A stretch of 63,243 nucleotides of DNA, filler included, from Calcarisporiella thermophila CBS 279.70 (lineage: Eukaryota; Fungi; Calcarisporiellomycota): the NCBI RefSeq assembly GCF_041956535.1. It is 9 parts of 9 records of this genome, joined end to end, with 100 filler letters (N's around TTAATTAATTAA, not from the genome) between each part and the next. Parts side by side here need not be neighbours in the genome. Positions count along the whole stretch, not along the records: positions 15,914 to 21,472 come from NW_027192224.1; 8 more parts are not named here. One strand, written 5' to 3'. The position numbers and the translations under genes are program-made. The notes under the pieces are model-generated. The model had not been told where the DNA came from, searched no databases, and saw only the letters and a list, made by a program, of their open reading frames with translations. The number at the start of each line of letters is the position of its first letter. Positions within the stretch are counted from its first letter, which is position 1. Shown one piece after another: positions 1 to 21,591 of the stretch.

Positions 1-1818
1 CAACAGAGGTGTTGTGTGGAAGATTGGAAGGTGTTGAGATAATGTACGTATCCCGCTTATCCGATTACTATCCTAAGTCCTCCTTTGCAACAACCCAAGA
101 TTCTTGGACATTCCAAGACCATCATTCTCGCATTCCGGAATGAGGTAAATATTCAAGAGGTAATCAAAGATGGCTTTTACGCTAATAATCTGAAAGTCCC
201 GTGTTACAAGACTCTCTCCACGTCCCAGAGAGTGTTAAAGATTAGAATTAACGACCTCCCTGGTCAGGAAGAGGAATCCCTCAGGGGAAAATTGGAAGCA
301 GCCTTGTCCAAGTATGCTCGAGTCATTCAGATCGACTTCCAATACTATGGCAACACGGGGTGGTTACAAGACTACTGCTACGCCATACTTGAGCCGAACC
401 CTGAAACCATGGAACCTTTAGAAAACCTTCTACCTCGCCAGCTATCCATCGATGAGGACAAGATATCACATCCAGCGACCTACAACAAACCCTCAGAATA
501 GCTAGAAACTTCTATCAAACATTATACTCGCAGAATGTGACCAACAAAGAAGATCAAAGAAGCTTCCTACCCTACACCCTCCCAAAGATTCCAACCGAGA
601 AAATGGCACACCTGGAGAGCAGATTTAGTGAGAAGGAAATAGGAATAGCACTAAGATACGCACCAAAAAATAAGTGCCCCGGACCAGATGGCCTACCTTT
701 CGAATTTCTCCAAACTTTTAGCCACATTCTGACGCCTTTCCTAACGAAAGTATTTAACGCAATCCTCTCCGGTCAGAACGAAGCCCTAGGAAAATACACG
801 CTACTAACACTCATACACAAAAAGAAGGGCGACCCGAAAGATCTAAAGAATTGGAGACCTATCAGCCTAATAAATTGCGACGCAAAGCTCATGACAAGGA
901 TAATAGCCTTCAGAATCCAACCGGCGATGAAAACCATTATTAACCCATCACAGACTGGCTTTATCAGAGGGAGAAACATATCTGAAAACACCATGACCAT
1001 CAACCAAATACTCAACCTCGCAAAGATAGAGGAATTAAACGGGGCGCTCATTCTTCTAGACAACGAAAAAGCGTATGATAGGATAGACCGAGGTTGGCTC
1101 ATGGAATGCCTTAGAGCCTTCGGGTTCGGGGCGAAGTTTACACGCCTAATCGCATCCATATACAAGGAAAACACAGCGGCAGTCATAACAATCACATCAC
1201 CCTACCCTTTCCGGTCAATCAAGGAGTACGTCAGGGCGACCCTTTATCACCCCTGCTCTATAACATTGCCATAGAACCCCTTCTGATAAAATTAAGAGCC
1301 AACCTTACTGGAATCACTATCCCGAGAGTCACTAGCATCGTCACCACAGCCTTCGCGGATGATATTACAGTTGCGGTAGCAAACCGGCAAGACATAGACA
1401 CCCTCTCAAAGACACTCACCGATTTCCAGAGAGCTTCTAACTCCAAAATCAATTACCACAAGTCAGAACCCGTCCCTCTATCATCGCCAGCCAGAGCAAC
1501 CCTTTCGCCACCATGTGACTTCATCCATGAAGAAGGGACATTCACTCTTCTTGGAATATCTACCAACCGATGATCGAACCCGAGGCACACGCCCTAGTCG
1601 CAAGGAACCCTGACAGATACTCGAGGGAATTCAGAGAACATTATCTCGATCTTCACCTACTATGGAGGAGAAAGCTGCTCCACCTAGACGAACGACTTGC
1701 TGAGACTCTCACACAGCGAATCCCCCCTGTTGGTAACAAACACAAATACCCTTCCATTCACTTCAGATAAAAATCATCAAGTGGATGTAAAAAATACACC
1801 TCAAGGGAGGAAAAAAAA
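1..1818 (+). mobile_element. Degenerate, internally deleted non-LTR retrotransposon (LINE): ORF1/Gag fragment joined to RT fragment
   Basis: ORF 85-501 resembles a LINE ORF1 (LKIRINDLP...LSKYARVIQI). 537-1274 has RT motifs KCPGPDG, WRPISLIN, QTGF and DNEKAYDR. After a frameshift the frame continues QGVRQGDPLSPLLYNI and AFADD (about 1219-1363). The endonuclease domain is missing. Short A-run at about 1811-1818. Confidence 0.9.
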
Positions 1819-1844
1819 CCATTCTTTTCTAGTACCAATTTATG

Positions 1845-2535
1845 TACTATTTTAAACTTTGATATACTATTCCTTTTGAAATCTCTTTTCATTTCAATGC
1901 TTTTAATCGAGCTTGCTTTGCATTATCTTTTTATGGTTTCATTGGTATGTAATGGTGAGGCTTTATGTTGACATGTTTCGCTCGAGTTATCACAGCTGAT
2001 CTAGCATACTCTAGTTCTTCTAGACGTTGCACGGTCTGTTCCTTATGTTCCTCGGGCGAGCCATCCCATAAGTACGGTACTGTATTGTCGCCAGTAATGC
2101 AAGGCTCACGTCCAAGACGGAACAATTTAATGGTGCATTCGGAAAAATATTGATAAAGTATGTTAAGAGTGCCACTCACAAGTGGGATGTCTTCGTCAAC
2201 CAAGCCCTATTTGCATTACGTATACGTGCACATTCTACTATTATGTACTCGCCATTCTACCTTGTATATGGATGTGAGACCTGTATTCCTGGCGACACCA
2301 TAGCACCATTATGGGAAGATTCACCCGAGCACCATAAGAAACAGACTGCGCAACGTCTAGAAGAACTAGAGTATGCTAGATCAGCTGTGATAACTCGAGC
2401 GAAACATGTCAAAATAAAGCCTCACCATTACATACCAATGAAACCATAAAAAGATAATGCAAAGCAAGCTCGATTAAAAGCATTGAAAAGAAAAGAGATT
2501 TCAAAAGGAATAGTATATCAAAGTTTAACATAGTA
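1845..2535. repeat. Long inverted duplication of an LTR-retrotransposon integrase C-terminal fragment
   Basis: ORFs 1931-2203(-) and 2150-2449(+) end in the same peptide QRLEELEYARSAVITRAKHV(N/K)IKPHHYIPMKP. WD...ALFALR...HST..YSPFYLVYG is the Ty3/Gypsy integrase signature. Confidence 0.85.
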
Positions 2536-4639: not shown

Positions 4640-7600
4640 ATGACTATCGTTCAGGAAAATGAAAATGAAACGGTAATGATCGATTCTGCCACGAAATTTC
4701 CTTTTTAGCGAATATTTCCAGTGCTATATGCAAGAAATTTTATTTAATTCGATTGACTTTTATTTGATCTGTCATTTTTGTTATTGATAACAGCGGATAG
4801 AAATGGGCGAGCCCGATAATGGCACCGATGCTACTTCCTCCAGTGCTCTAAAGGCAGACGAGACTAGAGAAGATAGTCGTGATGGCTATCACCCTATCCG
4901 AATATCTGGGCAATCCCCACAACAAAGAAAATCAAATGGAACAAGACCTAAAAAGCTTTCAGCGCATCATAACCAAGCTGCTGAGGATGATTTTCAAGTA
5001 GTTGAAAATCGGCGAGGGTAAGAAATTATACTTTTAATTAGATATTAAATAATAGCATACTAATATCACACCTTTAAGATTTTTTGATATCAAAGCTTCA
5101 TCGTTATCAGCCAATGGTCCAAGCAGCATGTATAACTCTGGAGGCTCAGAAGGTATTGAGAGAAGGTCTGTGGATATAGAAGAGTTAAACTGGGATGACA
5201 ATATCCAAACTACTACAAGCCGCAACCCCTCTCCAACGCCAAGTGAATATGATAAATGTCCAAATCCAACTCCTGTCGAAAAGATCAATGCAAAGCAACA
5301 CAGAATACATCATCGTCTTCATGCCAAATTTATCAAAAGCCTCACCACGGAGAAAATGTGGCATATTCATAAATCTGCTGTTGCTTATACTCTGGTTTCG
5401 CTCTTGACCTTGATTGCACCGGTCGCGAAATGGTTAGGGCCTTTCTCATTCATGTCAGTCTTGGGAATTGTTTATCTCAATCCTGCTCGAACAGTCGGTG
5501 CACAACTAGAGGCTAGTCTCCTTGGAGTGTTTGGGTGTGTCATCGCATGCATCTACTGTATGGCTATACGAGCACTTACCGCATACGTCAATATGAACAA
5601 TCCAGGTAGCTACGCCGGGCGTTGGGTACTCGCAATAGCCCTGTTTGTATTTGTATTTTGTGTAACCTACGCTCGCATTACCTGGGCACGATTATTTGCA
5701 TTCTGGCTCTACACAACCATCATCGCTATATGGGCGTTAACTCGAGACGTTGATGAGACAGTGACAAATCCTCGCGATGAACTTGATCTCTCTCTACCGA
5801 TTGTTTGTGGGATACTAATCACTCTAGCTGTAAATATTTTGGTGCATCCTGAAATGGCGACGCAACGACTTGGCAAAAAGTTGAACGAAACACTTGGACG
5901 CTGTCTCCGTGTTCTTAACTATACGACAGCTGCTTTCCTCCTACATCCATCTGCCCGCAATATCTCATTGGAAACGATCATTACTGAGGCAGAGGCTATG
6001 CGAATCGCATTTGGGCAGCTATCGGATGCGTACTACGAGGCTCGCAACGAACTTTCGTATTCTTGTTTTAATCCTACCGACATTAAGCCCATCAAAATTA
6101 GAATATCGGCTCTGATTCAACACCTCTCAAGCATGGTACTCAGTTTACGTAACCAAAAGACACTTGTTGAGGAAGTGAGAGGTTTGGCTCAAGCTGTTGG
6201 GGCAAATGAGGACATCATTAAGACTTTGTTAACGGTCGAGGAGTTACGGAGACATATGATGGAGATTGAGATGGAGGACGAGGGGGGAATGACCGAGATC
6301 CGCAGAAGTCAATCTGGGATGACACATCGTACATTGGATAAGGGGAAATCTGCACAATCTATACTAAACTTTACTTCTCTGGTCGAAAGGCCGCCTTCTG
6401 CCTCTGTAAAGATCGTAGAGCCAAATCCCGAGAGAGAAATCAACGGCGAAGGGAAATGCGATGAACGGATTAACCCATCAACGCCCTCGATTAGATCCCA
6501 AGCACGCACTCCCTATTACCAGAACTACGGAAATGAGAATTCCCGAATTGACGATTGCGAACAAAACGATTTTATAGAATATCTCGATTCCGAAAACGAT
6601 GTCTCGGAAAAGAAATGGCCATCTTGGAAGTATCTTAGCAAAATTTCATGCCAATCTTCATCACGCTGGGATACTAGTTCAAGTGTGACAATGGACGAGA
6701 CTTCGCAATACTCCACTTCGCGCTGGTCAATGGCTGCTCTCAGTGGAATACCGAAGAAGGAGATTTCTTTTGGGGATAGGCGATTGTTGCTTTTATATCT
6801 CAGAGGGTAGGCGCAGTTTAAAAGCACTATTTATCGAATAGACTTAACTTTAGATATAAATAGTGTTAATGAACCACTCAACAATCTCTCCAATGCATGT
6901 GAATCGACGGTGCAAACAATTCAGCGAGAGCTTGTGCTTGAACTTGGCATTGATAGGAGCCCATGGGATCCAAATACAGGCAGCTCAAGAACAAACATTA
7001 GGAGATCACTGTTCCAGTCGATAGTATACCTTTTTCGTGAATGCTTTCCATGGATATTTCCCTCGCAATTTCTTCCTACATCCGAAAAAACTATGCAGAA
7101 TAGAAAGAACTCGTCAAATTTTCAATCAACCGATATTCAGGTAGACCAAGATAATCAAGGAAATCGCGAGCAAGCCGGTGCTCCTGGTGAAGAGAAATGT
7201 CCTAGACATATTTCCGAGGAGATGGAACAGTTTGATCTTCACACGCGGCAATTTCTGAAACCATATGGATTTTCCGGTGATGATACTGAGGACGAAAAGA
7301 TTAACAATGGTATGGTAGATGTACAGCCTTGCGAAGAACTTTTCCTAGTGTTCTCTTTTATGTTTTCTTTACGTGAAGCGGCGCAGGAGTTGACGAATCT
7401 CTCTGAATATGTAAAGACTTTGAAAGAGAAAATGGAGCGAGGTTCTCAAGAGTACGGGGGCAAAGCTAAACGAAAACGCTGGTGGTGGCCACGAATTAGA
7501 TTGAGCAGTTGGATATCTTTAGAAGGCCAATCACAAAAATCGATTCAGGGAGGGACGACTCCTGGATATTTTGATAGAGCTGGAGAAGCATATGGTGATG

Positions 7601-14517: not shown

Positions 14518-16373
14518 AGTCAAATGATTTTGTTATGGAAGTTACCCTGTCTATTTAGCTGTACGGGATACTCTGCAAGAAAAATGTTTTAAAAATAAAC
14601 AGGTGTCAACCGATTGAAATCATTTACTAGTAAACTCATTTGTAGCTTTAAAATTGGTAAAATATATTACATTAGATTAGATAAATTGAAAGATACAATG
14701 GAACCAGCTTGTTTTGCACTTTGATAATATTCGACCTTAATTCGAGGTCTCACCAATTTGATATTAGAATTACTAAGCGCAAGGAGGCGGCGAGAGATTG
14801 AAATGTTCCGAGGTCGGAGGTGCATGCAGGATATAGCGATAGAAGGGTTGTTAAAGCTGTACTGGTATTGGAAGGATTAATAAAAGCTCCTTTTCAATTA
14901 TTATTCGTTTTTATTTATCCTTTTTTTTTTCGAGAGCTTAATGTCAATTAGTATCCTAGCATTATTTTATTAACTAACAATTACAAGATATTGGATAATA
15001 CACTCATTTACAATATACAGTATACTATTAATAATCAGCCACTAATAATCTAAATAATCTAAATAATCTAAATTTTTTTCCACCTATATAATTCATATGC
15101 TTTATTAGAGTCTTTTCAGCTTTAAATATTCTAATAAACTAAGTATGATAAAATAAAAAAGAGCTGACTATGTCATGATCTGGAGCATATAAAAGACCAG
15201 GATAGCAATCGTAAGAATGCCAACAAGTAATAAGCTGTTGGCTTCGAATACATATTTCCGCCCAACTTGATTCTCGCAATCAAAGGAAGACTAAAAGGAT
15301 TCTAGCCGAAATTGGGGATGTGTATGCGGATCTGGGCTCCTGTTACAATGAAATAGCCTTGAAACTTGAGGAGATACAGAGCGACTAATCCGATAAATAC
15401 AAGCTTTTTATTTTAATTTTTCCTCTAAGGTATTGTGTTTGTAGTATCATAACAACATATGAAACCAAATATTTCCAAAAAGTTGGCTGGTTTCATCACA
15501 GCTATGGACTCCACTTGGATGACAGCTAAGATCACTTATGAGTAGTTGCAGGCGGCCTCTTGACTATGCCATCTGGTCGGGGTACCTTAAAGATGCTTCT
15601 CTTGTTCTAGGCGGCTTTTTACATGAGGTCTACTCTGCCCAATTTGCTCCTCGTGGGTTCTAATATACAATGAACGTGAGTGTTATCCCCATGCTTCTAG
15701 ATACCGCCACCATAATTGTGCCAAATCTTCTCAGTCGAGAATTGATAGGCATGATCAAAGGTTGTAAAAATATGGCTAATTGAGCCCCCAAAAATCTAAT
15801 TTTGAATTAAGAANNNNNNNNNNNNNNNNNNNNNNNNNNNNNNNNNNNNNNNNNNNNTTAATTAATTAANNNNNNNNNNNNNNNNNNNNNNNNNNNNNNN
15901 NNNNNNNNNNNNNAATCCGAATAAGCGGAAGCGTGAACACTCCCATAGTAAAATCCATAAACTCTGCATTCTGTATGGAAACGCGAACACTTCTTTGGTA
16001 CGTACTCCCGTTTGGAGACAGTACATGCATCTATTCCGAAACTGAAAACGGTAAAATACGACCGCTGAGAGCAGATATCTCTCCTGGTGCTGGTATATGC
16101 TGTGGACTCTCACAAATCTATCTTCAGTGAGGAAGATAGTAATATCCCGATAATATTGTGTATGGGAGCCATATAAATCAATTAAAACTCCTCTTCCTAA
16201 GTCTTACTGAATTATCCAGTGAATAAACCCACCAAAGGTTTCTCTAACAGACTGCATTATACTCTTTTTATGAATTTGAAAATATGAGAAGAGTATTCGC
16301 GAAAGTTATATAGTACACAGATAAAAAATTAAGTTTACTAATAATGAAAAATAAAACTAATGGGTTATTGATA

Positions 16374-16618
16374 GTTTCATGACCAGTTAATTTTCATTTT
16401 GCTAGACTTGCGGGAGCTCTTTTTTTTTTGCTATTCAAGGCAACCCAACTGGTTGGCAGTGTCATTAATATGGGTTATATCTGTGCCAGAGTGTTTGACT
16501 CAATAAGGCAGAGTTCTCTGTTATTTTGGAAGTCAAAGAAGAGTCGGAAGTGGAGGTATTGGGGGAATGGGTTCAATACGTGATAAATTCGAAGTACTAT
16601 ATGCTCGCAGACTTCTAA
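16374..16618 (+). pseudogene. Paralogue 1 of unknown gene family (last exon only, frameshifted)
   Basis: FHDQLIFILLDLRELF / LLFKATQLVGSVINMGYICARV / VILEVKEESEVEVLGEWVQYVI aligns with the last exons at 19251-19476 and 20621-20853. Confidence 0.7.
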
Positions 16619-16721
16619 TTTAGTCTTTATTGAATATTTCAACAGCGTTCAGTTAATTCTATACATCTACTCTTTCATAGAGTTAAATTACTAATATATT
16701 CTAATCTAATTTCATATATGA

Positions 16722-17087
16722 TCAAATGCCAGGTATTAAAGGCATGTCCCCGCCACGAACAAATTGAGTGAAGTCCATAAAATCAGCATCTTGAACCGAT
16801 ACGCGAATACTTATTAAATGTGGGCTTCCGTTGGGAGAATGGCCGTTCATCCATGGTAACTCTCGTATAGTACGAAGTACCAACAACACGTGTAAAAGCA
16901 TGCACCCACTTTGATGTCGATAAACGCTTTGCTGGATTCGAACATATCCAGCTTCAGAGAGGATGGCAGAAATTTCGGTATAATACCTTGTGTGATTTCC
17001 GAAGAACTCTATCAAAGCCCTACGCCCTAAATCGTATTTAATAATCCAGTGACCTACTCTCAATTGACCTTCTCTAACAGCTTCCAT
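16722..17087 (-). CDS. VapD/Cas2-like endoribonuclease (121 aa, intronless)
   Basis: IIKYDL (beta1 with Asp19), YTEISAILSEAGYVRIQQSVY (VapD Y.DI...L...GF.R.QGS.Y), LPWM, ISIRV and MDFTQFVR (VapD DFT..IK) appear in the VapD order and spacing. A-rich context before the ATG. Confidence 0.8.
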   Translation of the reverse strand: MEAVREGQLRVGHWIIKYDLGRRALIEFFGNHTRYYTEISAILSEAGYVRIQQSVYRHQSGCMLLHVLLVLRTIRELPWMNGHSPNGSPHLISIRVSVQDADFMDFTQFVRGGDMPLIPGI

Positions 17088-17329
17088 TTTATTTTTTTAG
17101 TAAACTTGAAAAAAAAATTAAGAGTGAAATATTTGAGCGAGATAAATGCTACCTCTAGATCAGTTTGAGGACTGAATATAAAGTATCTCTGTAAAGTTTT
17201 GGGGCAACTCAATATTTTTTAATTTTGCCTATATATCTCTTTACAATCAACGCCGGTATAAAAAAACAATTAAATTTTATTTGAAAAATCCACTTACGCT
17301 ATTGTCATTGCATATACTGTACAAATGAA

Positions 17330-17665
17330 TATTCTTTGTTAGCTCTTTACAAGTGAAATATTGATAAATATCGTAAATTTCCTTTAATCTAGATATAGAG
17401 ATTTTACAAATTATGGTGCCAAATTTTACTCTTTTCTTTACAAGGACATTATGATGAATACTCAAAAATTTGTATAGATAAAATGCTCTCCAATTGTCAT
17501 TTAGTATATCCTCCCTTTACCTTTACAACGGTTTGGATCTGTTCTAGCATCCTGCTGATCAGCTTCATACAATCCTCCTCCCTGAGTGACTCCAACACAA
17601 TATTCACCTTGTACCACAGATCACTCTAGCTCACTATCTTCGGGAATCTGCATCTCAGATGTCTG
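17330..17665 (-). mobile_element. Tc1/mariner transposase C-terminal remnant
   Basis: Reverse-complement homologue of 31565-31890 (..ERIQTV.KAKGGYTK and downstream flank). Confidence 0.8.
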
Positions 17666-18019
17666 CGCTTGTTCGTTAGTTGTATATGGTGCCCATGCAG
17701 TTGTCCATTACGCTTCTTTCAGAACCACTCTCGCCTTTCATTCCCAAAGATGAGTATTTGACACTCGTGAGAAAAAATGACACTATCCAAACTTCTACGG
17801 TTCAATTACTGTATTTCTTTGCAAATGCCAGTTTACTAAGACGATGTTTTTCGATCGAAAGTGTTTTTTCCCCTTGGCCCTTGCTAACAAATAATTACGA
17901 TGGAGTGTTTCACGTACAATTGTCACAGAAATAACCTCCTTAGCTGTCACGCTTCAAAGTTCTTATGCCTTGAATGCGTTCTTACACTCTCCTGTTGCAG
18001 TGCTTCTACATAATCTATT

Positions 18020-18285
18020 TTCACTATGATTGGAATATTTGAGTGGCCAGCCCATTTTCTTTATTGAAAGATTCTTCATTCTGGAGTATTCTTTATCCTA
18101 AGACCACTTTGACGCCGGTAAACGTTTTGCCGGATTCGTTCGAATCCGGTTTCAGAAAGAATGCTTTGCGATCTTGTAATAGAAACGAGTGTAATTGCAA
18201 TAAGAATTATCACGGCTTTCCGCCCTAATTCATACTTTACAATCAAATGCCTTACTGTAGTAAGACCTTCACTAACAGCTTGCAC
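18020..18285 (-). pseudogene. Degenerate second copy of the VapD/Cas2-like gene
   Basis: VQAVSEGLTTVRHLIVKYELGRKA...ILSETGFERIRQNVYRRQSG aligns to 16722-17087. ATG>GTG, YDL>YEL, compensating frameshifts (NYTRFYYKI in the other frame) and an early stop. Upstream 18305-18348 matches 17108-17155. Confidence 0.8.
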
Positions 18286-18500
18286 TGTTTTTTGTCTGTG
18301 AATTAAAAAAAGCAAGAGCAAAATATTTGAGAGAGATAAATGCCACCTACCCTCTTAGTTGAATATATACTATTCGATTTTCGGGTAATCAACCAACTAG
18401 GTTAGGTTTGAGAAAATGAAAAAACTGATATATTTGTGAGGATGAGTCGACATTTCAAGTTTTCCAAAGCTTCTCCGGTAAACTGTATAAAGTGAACATA

Positions 18501-19476
18501 ATGTCGAATGAAGATACCTCTCTGACCATCAAGTATCTAACCGACCGTAAGTTATAGTGGTTTTAGTAGTTTATTTTCCTTATACCTCACTTACGCCTAT
18601 TTTTTATCATTTGCTATATTTTCATAAAAAAGAATTAAACAACTTGGTCAAGGAGAGCGAAGAAAATTCTCGCATGTACTACAAGTGCTTGACTACTAAT
18701 ATATACGGAAAAGAGTATCTTGATCCCGCTAAATGCGAAGCTAACAATTTCGATCCAATAAAGTAAGGAGATTAGCAATGCTATTCATAATATACTAACG
18801 TATTCTAAAATAGGGCATGTAATGAGGAAGATATGAGGTACAAACTACTTTCGGAATATTGCGACGGTATCCGAAATTTGGTTGGTTGGCGTGAAACGAT
18901 TAACATTATATTTTCAGTAATGTAAGAAAAGTTATCTTAAATGGCTGTTAAATGGGAAGAGAAGTCATTTTGTATTTTAGCCCGGAGAAATATAAGAAAA
19001 AGCAAACGGGGCGCTCATTAGAAATACTCCATATTCCGGATACAGCTCATATGCGCGTTGAAAAGCGATCGAGAAATGTGAGAGATTTGGAATTGATTTT
19101 GAATGCTGTATGTGCTTGCTCTGAAACGCAATTTCATACAGAAAATACTTTCCTCGGTCTCCAAGGCTGCCCAGCGTATTATTCCAAGAAAGAACCAAAA
19201 GCACACTGGAAAGCAACCGAGTAGCGTAATGCATTGAAAACTGATTTTAGGTGTCATGAAGTACTGAATTACTCTTTAATACGCTTGCAGGAGTCTCTGT
19301 TTAGTAAGGCTTATCAACTCATCGGCCATGAGGTTACCATCGGCGATAGCTATGCAAAGGTGATTGCCGTCAAAGCGACAGAGGATTCTGTCACTTTGGA
19401 GGTTAAAGAGGAGGTGGAAGAAGGCATCTGGGACCAATATGAGATTGAATATGATACTATTATGAAACCACGCTGA
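18501..19476 (+). CDS. Paralogue 2: apparently intact 5-exon gene of unknown function (about 235-250 aa) with a C-terminal small beta-rich domain
   Basis: Phase-compatible exons 18501-18546, 18633-18762, 18814-18921, 18981 to about 19175 (or 19220) and 19251-19476. GTAAG donors for introns 1-3 and a TACTAAC branch site in intron 2. Ends LIGHEVTIGDSYAKVIAVKATEDSVTLEVKEEVEEGIWDQYEIEYDTIMKPR. Confidence 0.65.
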
Positions 19477-20124
19477 ACCGCCTATGAGCAAGCTCAGGTT
19501 ACCCATTGGTATATACAGCGAATACAATACTTGCTAACGCAATGCTAAGCGAGAAAACAAATGCATCCGCCTTCTCTATATATACAGAGAGCATGGGTGA
19601 ATCACACTAGGAAATTTTTTTTTTTCTAAATTTGTGATCATACGAGTTCGGATTCTATGTCAATTGAGTTTTATTTTGCTACTTAGTTTAAGGCGACTTG
19701 TATTTTTGCGCAATGCATTCCCTGTGTTTCTGAAATAATCAAAGTTGAATGGCTCGTCTTTCTTTAGGTTGAGTCCTCTCGAAGGCCTGATATAATGGTT
19801 AGTGGATAAAAAGCTAAATGCCGTGCTAAACGGCCATTTTCTTTGTCGATCAGCGAGAATGTTATCATAGTGGAATATCCCTTACTATTACAAGGAGTTA
19901 ATGCCACAATGCGGGTCGACAGTAAGCTCGAGCTAGAAAAGAGTGAAGGATGACGCGGAGTTTTTTTAAGAGTTAAAATTCAATAAAAGTCTCTGCTCTA
20001 GGCAAAATGGAACCGCGTTTCAAACCCTGGCGATACCTATGTCAAGGTGATTACTGCCGAGATGTCAGAGAAATCGTTAGGAGAGTAAAAAATCGGCTCG
20101 AGTATATTATGAGTGCATGTGCAC

Positions 20125-20853
20125 TGACAAATATGGGCAAACGTATCTCGATCGGGAAAATGGCTAGGCTAACAAATTCGATCCGATAAACGTAAGGTGG
20201 CTAATGTTTTTTTTTTGATCAAAAGTGAGTTTTTATTGTTTAAGAAGACTCTAAAGTGCAATTGTTACATTATTAAAAGTAATAAAATGAGAGAAAAGCT
20301 AGATTTTAACGCGGCATTGCAATTCGGGGTAAGTTGATCATAACAAATTTTCTCCTCAAATGGGTAGATGAGTAATAAAACTCATCTAACTTTGGGTATT
20401 AGGGGACGACTTGATAAATAAGGTGGCTGATGGTGTGTGATGCGTACGACTATATGCTGATGTATTTCATAGTAGATTCACTAGCGATCAAGTAATGAGG
20501 ATCAAAATTGCTATTAGGTATTGCGGCGATATTAGTGATATGCTTGATTGACGCGAAGATAATCAAGTGATTCCGTCTAATATGTAGTCAAGAAGCATGA
20601 CACATCTAAACTCGATTTTAGATGCTATAATCAGTTGAGTTTTATATGGTTACTCTTACAGGATCTCTTTATTTTGCTCTGGAAGGCAACTCGACTTGTT
20701 GACAGTGAGATCGGCATTAGTGATACCTATGCAAAGGTGATTGCTGTTAAAATGACAGATTTAGTTGATGTTTTGGAAGTCAAAGAAGAGGTAGAGGAGG
20801 GCATATGGGACAAATATGTAATCGATTGCAATTCTAATATGAAGCCGCGCTGA
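20125..20853 (+). pseudogene. Paralogue 3 of unknown gene family, disrupted
   Basis: Remnants YLDRENG*ANKFDPIN (exon 2), YCGDISDMLD*RED (exon 3) and last exon ...TYAKVIAVKMTDLVDVLEVKEEVEEGIWDKYVIDCNSNMKPR. Internal stops and a LINE tail in an intron. Confidence 0.75.
20207..20418 (-). mobile_element. 5'-truncated LINE 3' UTR insertion
   Basis: Poly-T at 20207-20216, similarity to 13495-13690, and a 14-bp TSD TAAGGTGGCT(A/G)ATG at 20193-20206 and 20419-20432. Confidence 0.85.
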
Positions 20854-21312
20854 GCTTCTTTGAGCAAGTTCAGTTTTTCATCATATTTGTAAACAGCGAA
20901 TGCAATACTTGCAATCAATAGGCTAAAAAGGAAAATAAACCCATCGGTACTTTCTATCGCATACATCGAGCATGTATAAATAACACTTGGGAATTATCTA
21001 GATTCGTTATCATGTTGACCCAGGATGGATTGTTGAATATTTTGGCCTAAATATCCCAGTGATGTGCCATTGTTTAATAAAGAGATAGGGGAAACTGTGA
21101 GTAATATAGCTAATAGTCACTAGCAATTTATCAAATATTAAGCTAGATATGTGTTGTTATGCATTAAATCAGCTATGTTTTATTATGTGCACTTTATTTG
21201 CCAATTTAGCTGCAGTAAAATATTTCATGAAGCCACATCAGTTAGAATTAAGAATTTGAAGTAGGTTGGTATTATGATCCAAATGAAGTACAGCCGACGT
21301 ATTCTATAATAG

Positions 21313-21419
21313 AGCTTGTAATGACCAAGTTACGAGGATGAAGCTAATAGCCAAGTATTGCAGCGATATTAATAGGATGAATGATTGGCGTGAAGCAGAC
21401 AGATTGATGTTATCACTTA
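21313..21419 (+). CDS. Paralogue 4 of unknown gene family (exon-3 homologue; remainder lost in gap)
   Basis: AG-flanked exon ACNDQVTRMKLIAKYCSDINRMNDWREADRLMLSL, with near-identical length and the same phase-2 boundaries as ACNEEDMRYKLLSEYCDGIRNLVGWRETINIIFSV of paralogue 2. Confidence 0.7.
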
Positions 21420-21591
21420 TGTAGGTAGGCAATATCTCATATATTATTGATATATGGAGGGTGGAGTGCCCCNNNNNNNNNNNNNNNNNNNNNNNNNNNN
21501 NNNNNNNNNNNNNNNNTTAATTAATTAANNNNNNNNNNNNNNNNNNNNNNNNNNNNNNNNNNNNNNNNNNNNTAAGAATTATTCAATTGTC

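Follow-up and report, generated by a model that had tools for sequence, protein, structure and literature searches.

Why would a fungus, Calcarisporiella thermophila, have in its genome an open reading frame for a VapD-like ribonuclease, when VapD and Cas2 are generally seen as proteins of prokaryotes? The ORF, here called copy B, lies in one of the parts (positions 15914-21472) of the window, by which we mean the whole stretch of 63,243 nt that was analyzed. The initial annotation had described an intronless 121-aa ORF with a series of VapD motifs. The frame was indeed open from start to stop, and all motifs were in place (Y18-D19-L20, Y36, G47-Y-V-R-I-Q-Q-S54-V-Y, L77-P-W79, S93-I-R-V96, and D105-F-T107). 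The JGI annotation of the source assembly does not contain any gene for this product, so the ORF is unannotated. Going beyond the initial annotation, we found copy B to be the single intact member of an array of mostly decayed copies. It belongs to a family present in two fungal phyla, is under purifying selection, and has a spliced partner gene, here called X.

Bacterial contamination or a chimeric assembly would be an alternative to a fungal gene. The part of the window harboring copy B was an exact substring of the C. thermophila scaffold MU987597.1 (GCA_041956535.1, 241,882 bp) and represents the last 5,559 bp of it. Its location at a scaffold end, with an N gap of roughly 2.85 kb on the left side, is compatible with contamination, as is the otherwise prokaryotic range of the VapD family. 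However, we considered contamination very unlikely, because copies of both gene families were present on both sides of the N gap. Furthermore, the gene adjoining copy B (X1) carries GT-AG introns, and the GC content of the copy B ORF (42.6%) fitted that of the host exons (40.5%), compared to 25-32% in introns 1-2 and the flanking intergenic stretches. When 1.84 billion protein representatives were scanned exhaustively with HMMER, no bacterial protein was found at E ≤ 0.001, and a locus scan with the family alignment gave no match in 185,579 genomes of prokaryotic species, which also argued against a bacterial source. The same locus scan found no match in metagenome contigs or viral contigs. 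Homologs from Glomeromycota adjoin ordinary fungal genes, for example an aldehyde dehydrogenase gene in Funneliformis geosporum (locus L003). We concluded that copy B is a real fungal gene, and the initial annotation was right to place it on a fungal contig together with a gene containing spliceosomal introns.

The relationship of the protein to VapD and to Cas2 was assessed by profile and structure comparisons, as had been proposed with the initial annotation. The copy B protein matched the NCBIfam VapD model NF041506 with E = 1e-5 (25.9 bits), which is well beyond chance, although the curated equivalog cut-off of 100 bits was not reached. Matches to Cas2 models were weak for all three models used, namely Pfam PF09827 (E = 0.03, 14.9 bits, below the gathering score of 23.8), TIGR01573 (E = 0.04, 14.3 bits, below the cut-off of 24.5), and PADLOC Cas2 (E = 6e-4). 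A phmmer search of the PDB with the copy B protein had VapD of Haemophilus influenzae (6zi0, E = 9e-4) as the sole match. When a profile of seven family members was used against the PDB, VapD of Campylobacter jejuni was found with E = 1.9e-6 (9kan), VapD of Helicobacter pylori with E = 2.4e-4 (3ui3), the H. influenzae protein 6zi0 with E = 7e-4, and VapD 5dyr with E = 2e-3, while Cas2 ranked after the VapDs with E of about 0.5. Alignment of the family to the VapDs of a Riemerella and a Sulfuriferula plasmid by hhalign resulted in 95% probability and E values of 2-3e-8.

The AlphaFold2 model of the copy B protein (pLDDT 89.8, pTM 0.83) showed the order beta-alpha-beta-beta-alpha-beta. In a Foldseek comparison of this model to the PDB, ranks 1-10 were all VapD chains, with target-normalized TM values up to 0.75, and Cas2 followed lower down. 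Bacterial VapD clusters were also returned by both the features search and the shape search of the ESM Atlas. The assignment to a VapD/Cas2-like fold with a conserved Asp on beta1 was supported. We concluded that the copy B product is truly related to VapD, but only distantly, as it forms a separate branch and is not an equivalog.

The weak profile matches to Cas2 could also mean that copy B encodes an actual Cas2, the subunit that CRISPR-Cas systems use for adaptation. VapD scored higher than Cas2 in every test, however, and the host is a eukaryote. In agreement with the initial annotation, neither Cas1 nor a tandem or CRISPR-like repeat was present at positions 15914-21472, and no Rfam RNA family was found there either. 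The probability that copy B encodes a Cas2 is therefore practically negligible.

For the H. pylori VapD (HP0315), D7, L13, S43, and D76 were reported to be important for RNase activity (PMC3351183). Residues D19, L25, and S54 of the copy B protein align with D7, L13, and S43 and were invariant across the seven-sequence family alignment. In the HMMER and hhalign alignments, the Asp that starts beta4 in the VapDs of H. influenzae and Sulfuriferula pairs with His89 of copy B; this Asp is equated with D76 of HP0315 by its position on beta4 only and not by direct alignment. Position 89 was His in most of the aligned fungal members. Should His89 stand in place of the second acidic residue, catalysis may differ or be lost. 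Based on the conserved residues and the fold, the product would be a small, probably dimeric endoribonuclease, with catalysis by the beta1 Asp D19 together with S54 and perhaps His89. Compared to bacterial VapDs, the N-terminus of the fungal proteins is longer by about 12 conserved residues, about 4 residues are inserted ahead of beta4, and the C-terminus carries a tail with the motif F-V-R-G-G-x-x-P-x-I-P.

The HMMER scan of 1.84 billion representatives resulted in 15 matches at E ≤ 0.001, of which 14 were members of the family. The remaining match was a repetitive fish protein and evidently spurious. The members with a species name are from C. thermophila, Rhizophagus clarus, Funneliformis mosseae, and F. 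geosporum, and the others stem from soil or other metagenomes, including the full-length proteins P0002, P0003, P0004, and P0006. Further homolog searches recovered only these known fungal and metagenomic members. According to the NCBI taxonomy, the named hosts are members of Calcarisporiellomycota or Glomeromycota, and the family has so far been seen only in these two phyla and on a few metagenomic contigs. One metagenomic member was automatically named "virulence-associated protein VapD" by JGI, and the fungal proteins are listed as "uncharacterized" or "hypothetical". We found no paper on a fungal VapD in full-text literature searches, which is in line with the earlier statement that no function has been described for such proteins in fungi.

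A phylogeny had also been proposed with the initial annotation. In a tree of 10 sequences, a long branch with support of 100/100 parted the fungal-type clade from the bacterial side, which consisted of two VapDs only, and internal nodes were not resolved. The tree thus supported a separate fungal-type clade but did not point to a donor. Since the range of VapD is otherwise prokaryotic, horizontal origin from bacteria is a reasonable inference. The family is distant from all bacterial VapDs, which fits an old acquisition and a long subsequent stay in fungi, and the transfer would not be a recent one.

Copy B was the only intact VapD-like copy in the named genomes. At the end of scaffold MU987597.1 only one of five VapD-like copies was intact, a sixth copy on scaffold MU987670.1 was frameshifted, and one of the five copies of X in the cluster, X1, was intact (Table 1). 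The array reads as a series of tandem head-to-head pairs, namely copy A with an X remnant, copy B with its X lost, and copy C with X1, followed by X2 and X3. As copy B has lost its own adjacent X copy, the one surviving intact gene of each kind, copy B and X1, are divergent and 1.4 kb apart, with a dead copy between them.

Table 1. Positions and state of the VapD-like genes, the partner gene X, and an associated upstream element. Positions are those of the window unless a locus is given.
Feature	Locus or scaffold	Position	Strand	State and remarks
Copy A, VapD-like pseudogene	Window	15914-16260	minus	Several stops and frameshifts; 3' end cut by assembly gap
X remnant, last exon	Window	16383-16615	plus	Decayed; convergent with copy B; found by tblastn and blastn
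Copy B, VapD-like gene	Window	16722-17087	minus	Intact, intronless ORF, ATG to TGA, 121 aa
Conserved upstream element	Window	17111-17154	minus	44 bp; repeat family; upstream of copy B
Copy C, VapD-like pseudogene	Window	18076-18285	minus	ATG lost, Asp changed to Glu, frame truncated after about 70 codons; head-to-head with X1
X1, partner gene	Window	18501-19476	plus	Appears intact; exons 18501-18546, 18633-18762, 18814-18916, 19291-19476; 154 aa
X2, partner-gene pseudogene	Window	about 19970-20853	plus	In-frame stops in exon 2-like and exon 3-like parts
X3, exon 3-like fragment	Window	21287-21421	plus	Near scaffold end at 21472
106-codon VapD-like copy	L009, MU987597.1 left of N gap	1541-1861		73% identical to copy B
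Inverted partial VapD-like copy	L009, MU987597.1 left of N gap	1758-2042	minus	Partial
Paralog of C. thermophila	L001, MU987670.1	1259-1621		Pseudogene; two indels (2 + 1 nt) enclosing a stop
R. clarus VapD-like gene	L002, BLAL01000006.1	6001-6345		In frame over full length except for a single TAG at 6235-6237
F. mosseae VapD-like copy	L004			Match split over two reading frames; appears frameshifted
F. geosporum VapD-like copy	L003			Fragment only

The 106-codon copy left of the N gap has lost its 3' end to a partial duplicate of itself in inverted orientation. The paralog on MU987670.1 is annotated by JGI as a protein of 79 aa (P0001) by a model that splices out the frameshifted stretch; this copy is a pseudogene and not a spliced gene, and the annotated intron is invented. 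The annotated R. clarus protein P0005 (78 aa) corresponds to the portion ahead of the in-frame TAG. We concluded that the VapD-like family evolves by duplication and decay.

The element upstream of copy B recurred at copy C (18305-18348, 86% identical) and at the paralog on MU987670.1. Between copy C and X1 it was better conserved than the coding sequence of copy C itself. It may serve the divergent pair as part of a shared promoter or represent a 5' UTR. The stretch of about 0.9 kb between copies B and C (17160-18075) had no match elsewhere in positions 15914-21472 or in the fetched loci and no match to Pfam, and its GC content climbs to 42% at 17514-17913. This stretch may be an insertion that replaced the X partner of copy B. 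The remnant of a Tc1 element, which the initial annotation had listed for this contig, was not confirmed, as no Pfam transposase family was found in the ORFs of 17280-18097.

The high number of broken copies raises the question of whether copy B is merely a copy that has not yet been hit, without present function, in a family that is dying out. Four of the five copies at the scaffold end and the copy on MU987670.1 are broken, those of R. clarus, F. mosseae, and F. geosporum are broken or fragmentary, and the copy B ORF has no annotation, all of which would fit a decaying relic. Substitution rates were compared among the paralogs. Copy B and the MU987670.1 paralog, with the frameshifted codons left out, showed dN of 0.105 and dS of 0.58, and thus a dN/dS of 0.18 (Fisher p = 7e-9). 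For copy B and the 106-codon copy, dN/dS was 0.26 (p = 1.6e-6). Had one of the two lineages evolved neutrally after the duplication, a pairwise ratio of at least 0.5 would be expected, and therefore constraint acted on both during most of the time since they diverged. A neutral dN/dS, which had been named beforehand as evidence against the initial annotation, was not found. At the nucleotide level, identity was 83.5% for the coding sequence, compared to 74-78% for the flanking regions, and for exon 4 of X a dN/dS of 0.23 was calculated between X1 and X2. These values show that the VapD-like protein is under purifying selection despite the decay of copies. Together with the invariant D19, L25, and S54 and the intact full-length members in metagenomes, they make a relic without function an unlikely explanation for copy B.

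The exon model of X1 was built from GT-AG sites and conservation across species, and it differs from the JGI model across the same span, which has 216 aa. The third intron in our model (18917-19290) is long (374 nt) with an exon-like GC content of 38.8%, and the JGI model evidently places extra coding sequence there. This stretch was not conserved in the X gene of R. clarus (168 aa). The last exon of X2 is annotated as a C. thermophila protein of 77 aa (P0017). A further copy of X was found left of the N gap, and remnants of X were seen there at positions 3-65 and 460-627 of locus L009.

X was found head-to-head with a VapD-like gene at four loci in two phyla, namely in the window, in R. clarus (L002), in F. 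mosseae (L004), and on a soil contig (L008). In R. clarus, homologs of X exon 2 (E = 2e-16) and exon 4 (E = 6e-9) were located directly beside the VapD-like gene in divergent orientation, and both exons had homologs in the same arrangement in F. mosseae. On the soil contig a homolog of X exon 2 adjoins the intact VapD-like gene for P0002, also divergently. The pairing was not seen at the F. geosporum locus L003 or at the metagenome locus L012. Another metagenome contig (L013:454-936, minus strand) has an ORF without introns, at least 160 codons long, which is convergent with the gene for P0004 and whose end is 12 bp away from the stop of that gene. The C-terminus of the ORF product weakly matched X exon 4 with an hhalign E value of 0.009 and a probability of 4.5%, so that an X-like gene beside the intact P0004 gene is suggestive only.

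When the exons were searched separately, X had no relatives in Pfam, PADLOC, or the ESM Atlas, and the protein homolog search with exon 4 had the X2 fragment of the window itself as the sole match. Exon 4 was modeled as a small SH3-like beta-barrel with pLDDT 89, and Foldseek returned only generic SH3/KOW/Tudor-like barrels with E of about 0.4. A complex prediction for the VapD-like protein with exon 4 of X alone gave a score of 0.02, which speaks neither for nor against binding. X also showed no similarity to the small genes that are located upstream of the VapD genes on the Riemerella and Sulfuriferula plasmids.

The association with X makes it necessary to consider a toxin-antidote-like or defense module, with the VapD-like RNase as the toxin and X as the antidote or trigger. 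Such a pair would be a selfish or immune cassette that spreads and then decays, and this would account for the many copies at the scaffold end. The conservation of the head-to-head pair across two fungal phyla, the survival of a single intact copy of each gene in a cluster with many dead copies, and purifying selection on both genes are in line with this explanation. Moreover, VapDs of bacteria are toxins and have small partner genes next to them, as seen on the two plasmids and in the titles of the PDB entries 6zn8 and 9kan. On the other hand, X is unlike the genes adjacent to bacterial VapDs and unlike any known family, the pair is missing at some loci (F. geosporum L003 and metagenome L012), and the H. 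pylori VapD reportedly does not belong to a toxin-antitoxin system (PMC3351183). On balance we consider a toxin-antidote module rather improbable.

The explanation which we regard as probable as a whole is that copy B is an intact nuclear gene of the VapD branch, which belongs to a small and old fungal family, is under selection, and is linked to X. Because of the head-to-head linkage in two fungal phyla, the VapD-like product and X probably act together, and X could be a regulator, an antidote, or a specificity partner. A more far-reaching explanation, which we consider distinctly unlikely, is a eukaryotic two-gene toxin-antidote or immune cassette, in which a VapD RNase of bacterial origin was captured by early-diverging fungi and is controlled by X. 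A shared divergent promoter would then couple the VapD RNase to a fungus-born SH3-like X, duplication and decay would take place in clusters at scaffold ends, and the cassette would persist in, or move between, Calcarisporiellomycota and Glomeromycota.

Our data define a coherent VapD clade that so far comprises only fungi and metagenomes, is under selection, and has its own sequence additions and a eukaryotic partner. This raises the questions of whether eukaryotes can domesticate bacterial toxin-type RNases, what keeps such an RNase in check without a bacterial antitoxin, and whether toxin-antitoxin-like or immune cassettes occur in arbuscular-mycorrhizal and related fungi. There is also a point for annotation, since the sole intact C. 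thermophila copy is missing from the gene set, while a frameshifted paralog was annotated with an invented intron.

Among known systems, Cas2 (PF09827, TIGR01573) shares the fold superfamily and the beta1 Asp with the copy B protein and gave weak profile matches and lower-ranked structural matches. Unlike Cas2 systems, the locus has no Cas1 and no CRISPR array, and the matches to VapD were stronger throughout.

In the type II pairs VapXD and VapD-VapW, one specific neighbor gene is likewise coupled to a VapD-type protein. However, the bacterial partners are small, co-oriented, operonic, and located upstream, whereas X is divergent, spliced, larger (about 154 aa), and unrelated in sequence. A small gene ahead of the toxin gene, overlapping or abutting it, is the usual layout of a toxin-antitoxin operon. 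This layout is present at the bacterial VapD genes nearest to copy B. On the Riemerella plasmid (L010:1292-1788) the VapD gene is preceded by such an overlapping or abutting gene for a hypothetical protein of 72 aa, and on the Sulfuriferula plasmid (L011:1238-1719) by one for a DUF5397 protein of 66 aa; the latter pair is flanked by a Tn3 transposase and a recombinase. Directly upstream of copy B there was no small co-transcribed antitoxin ORF.

Multi-copy toxin-antidote genes of eukaryotes include wtf in fission yeast and Spok in Podospora, which are single genes or encode unrelated proteins. Like these, the VapD-like genes occur in multiple copies that cluster at a scaffold end and turn over rapidly by duplication and decay, leaving many pseudogenes; the likeness is one of gene arrangement.

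The closest known proteins are the bacterial VapDs (HP0315/3ui3, H. influenzae 6zi0/6zn8, C. jejuni 9kan, NF041506), which have the same Cas2-like ferredoxin fold and a similar size. The Asp, Leu, and Ser corresponding to D19, L25, and S54 are common to them and the fungal protein, with S54 in the beta2-beta3 turn, and the C-terminal D-F-T motif is common to copy B and the VapDs of H. influenzae and Sulfuriferula. Identity to the copy B protein is only about 22-34%, and scores are below the curated cut-offs. Unlike the bacterial VapDs, the copy B family is encoded in fungal nuclear genomes, and it represents a eukaryotic variant of the known VapD family.
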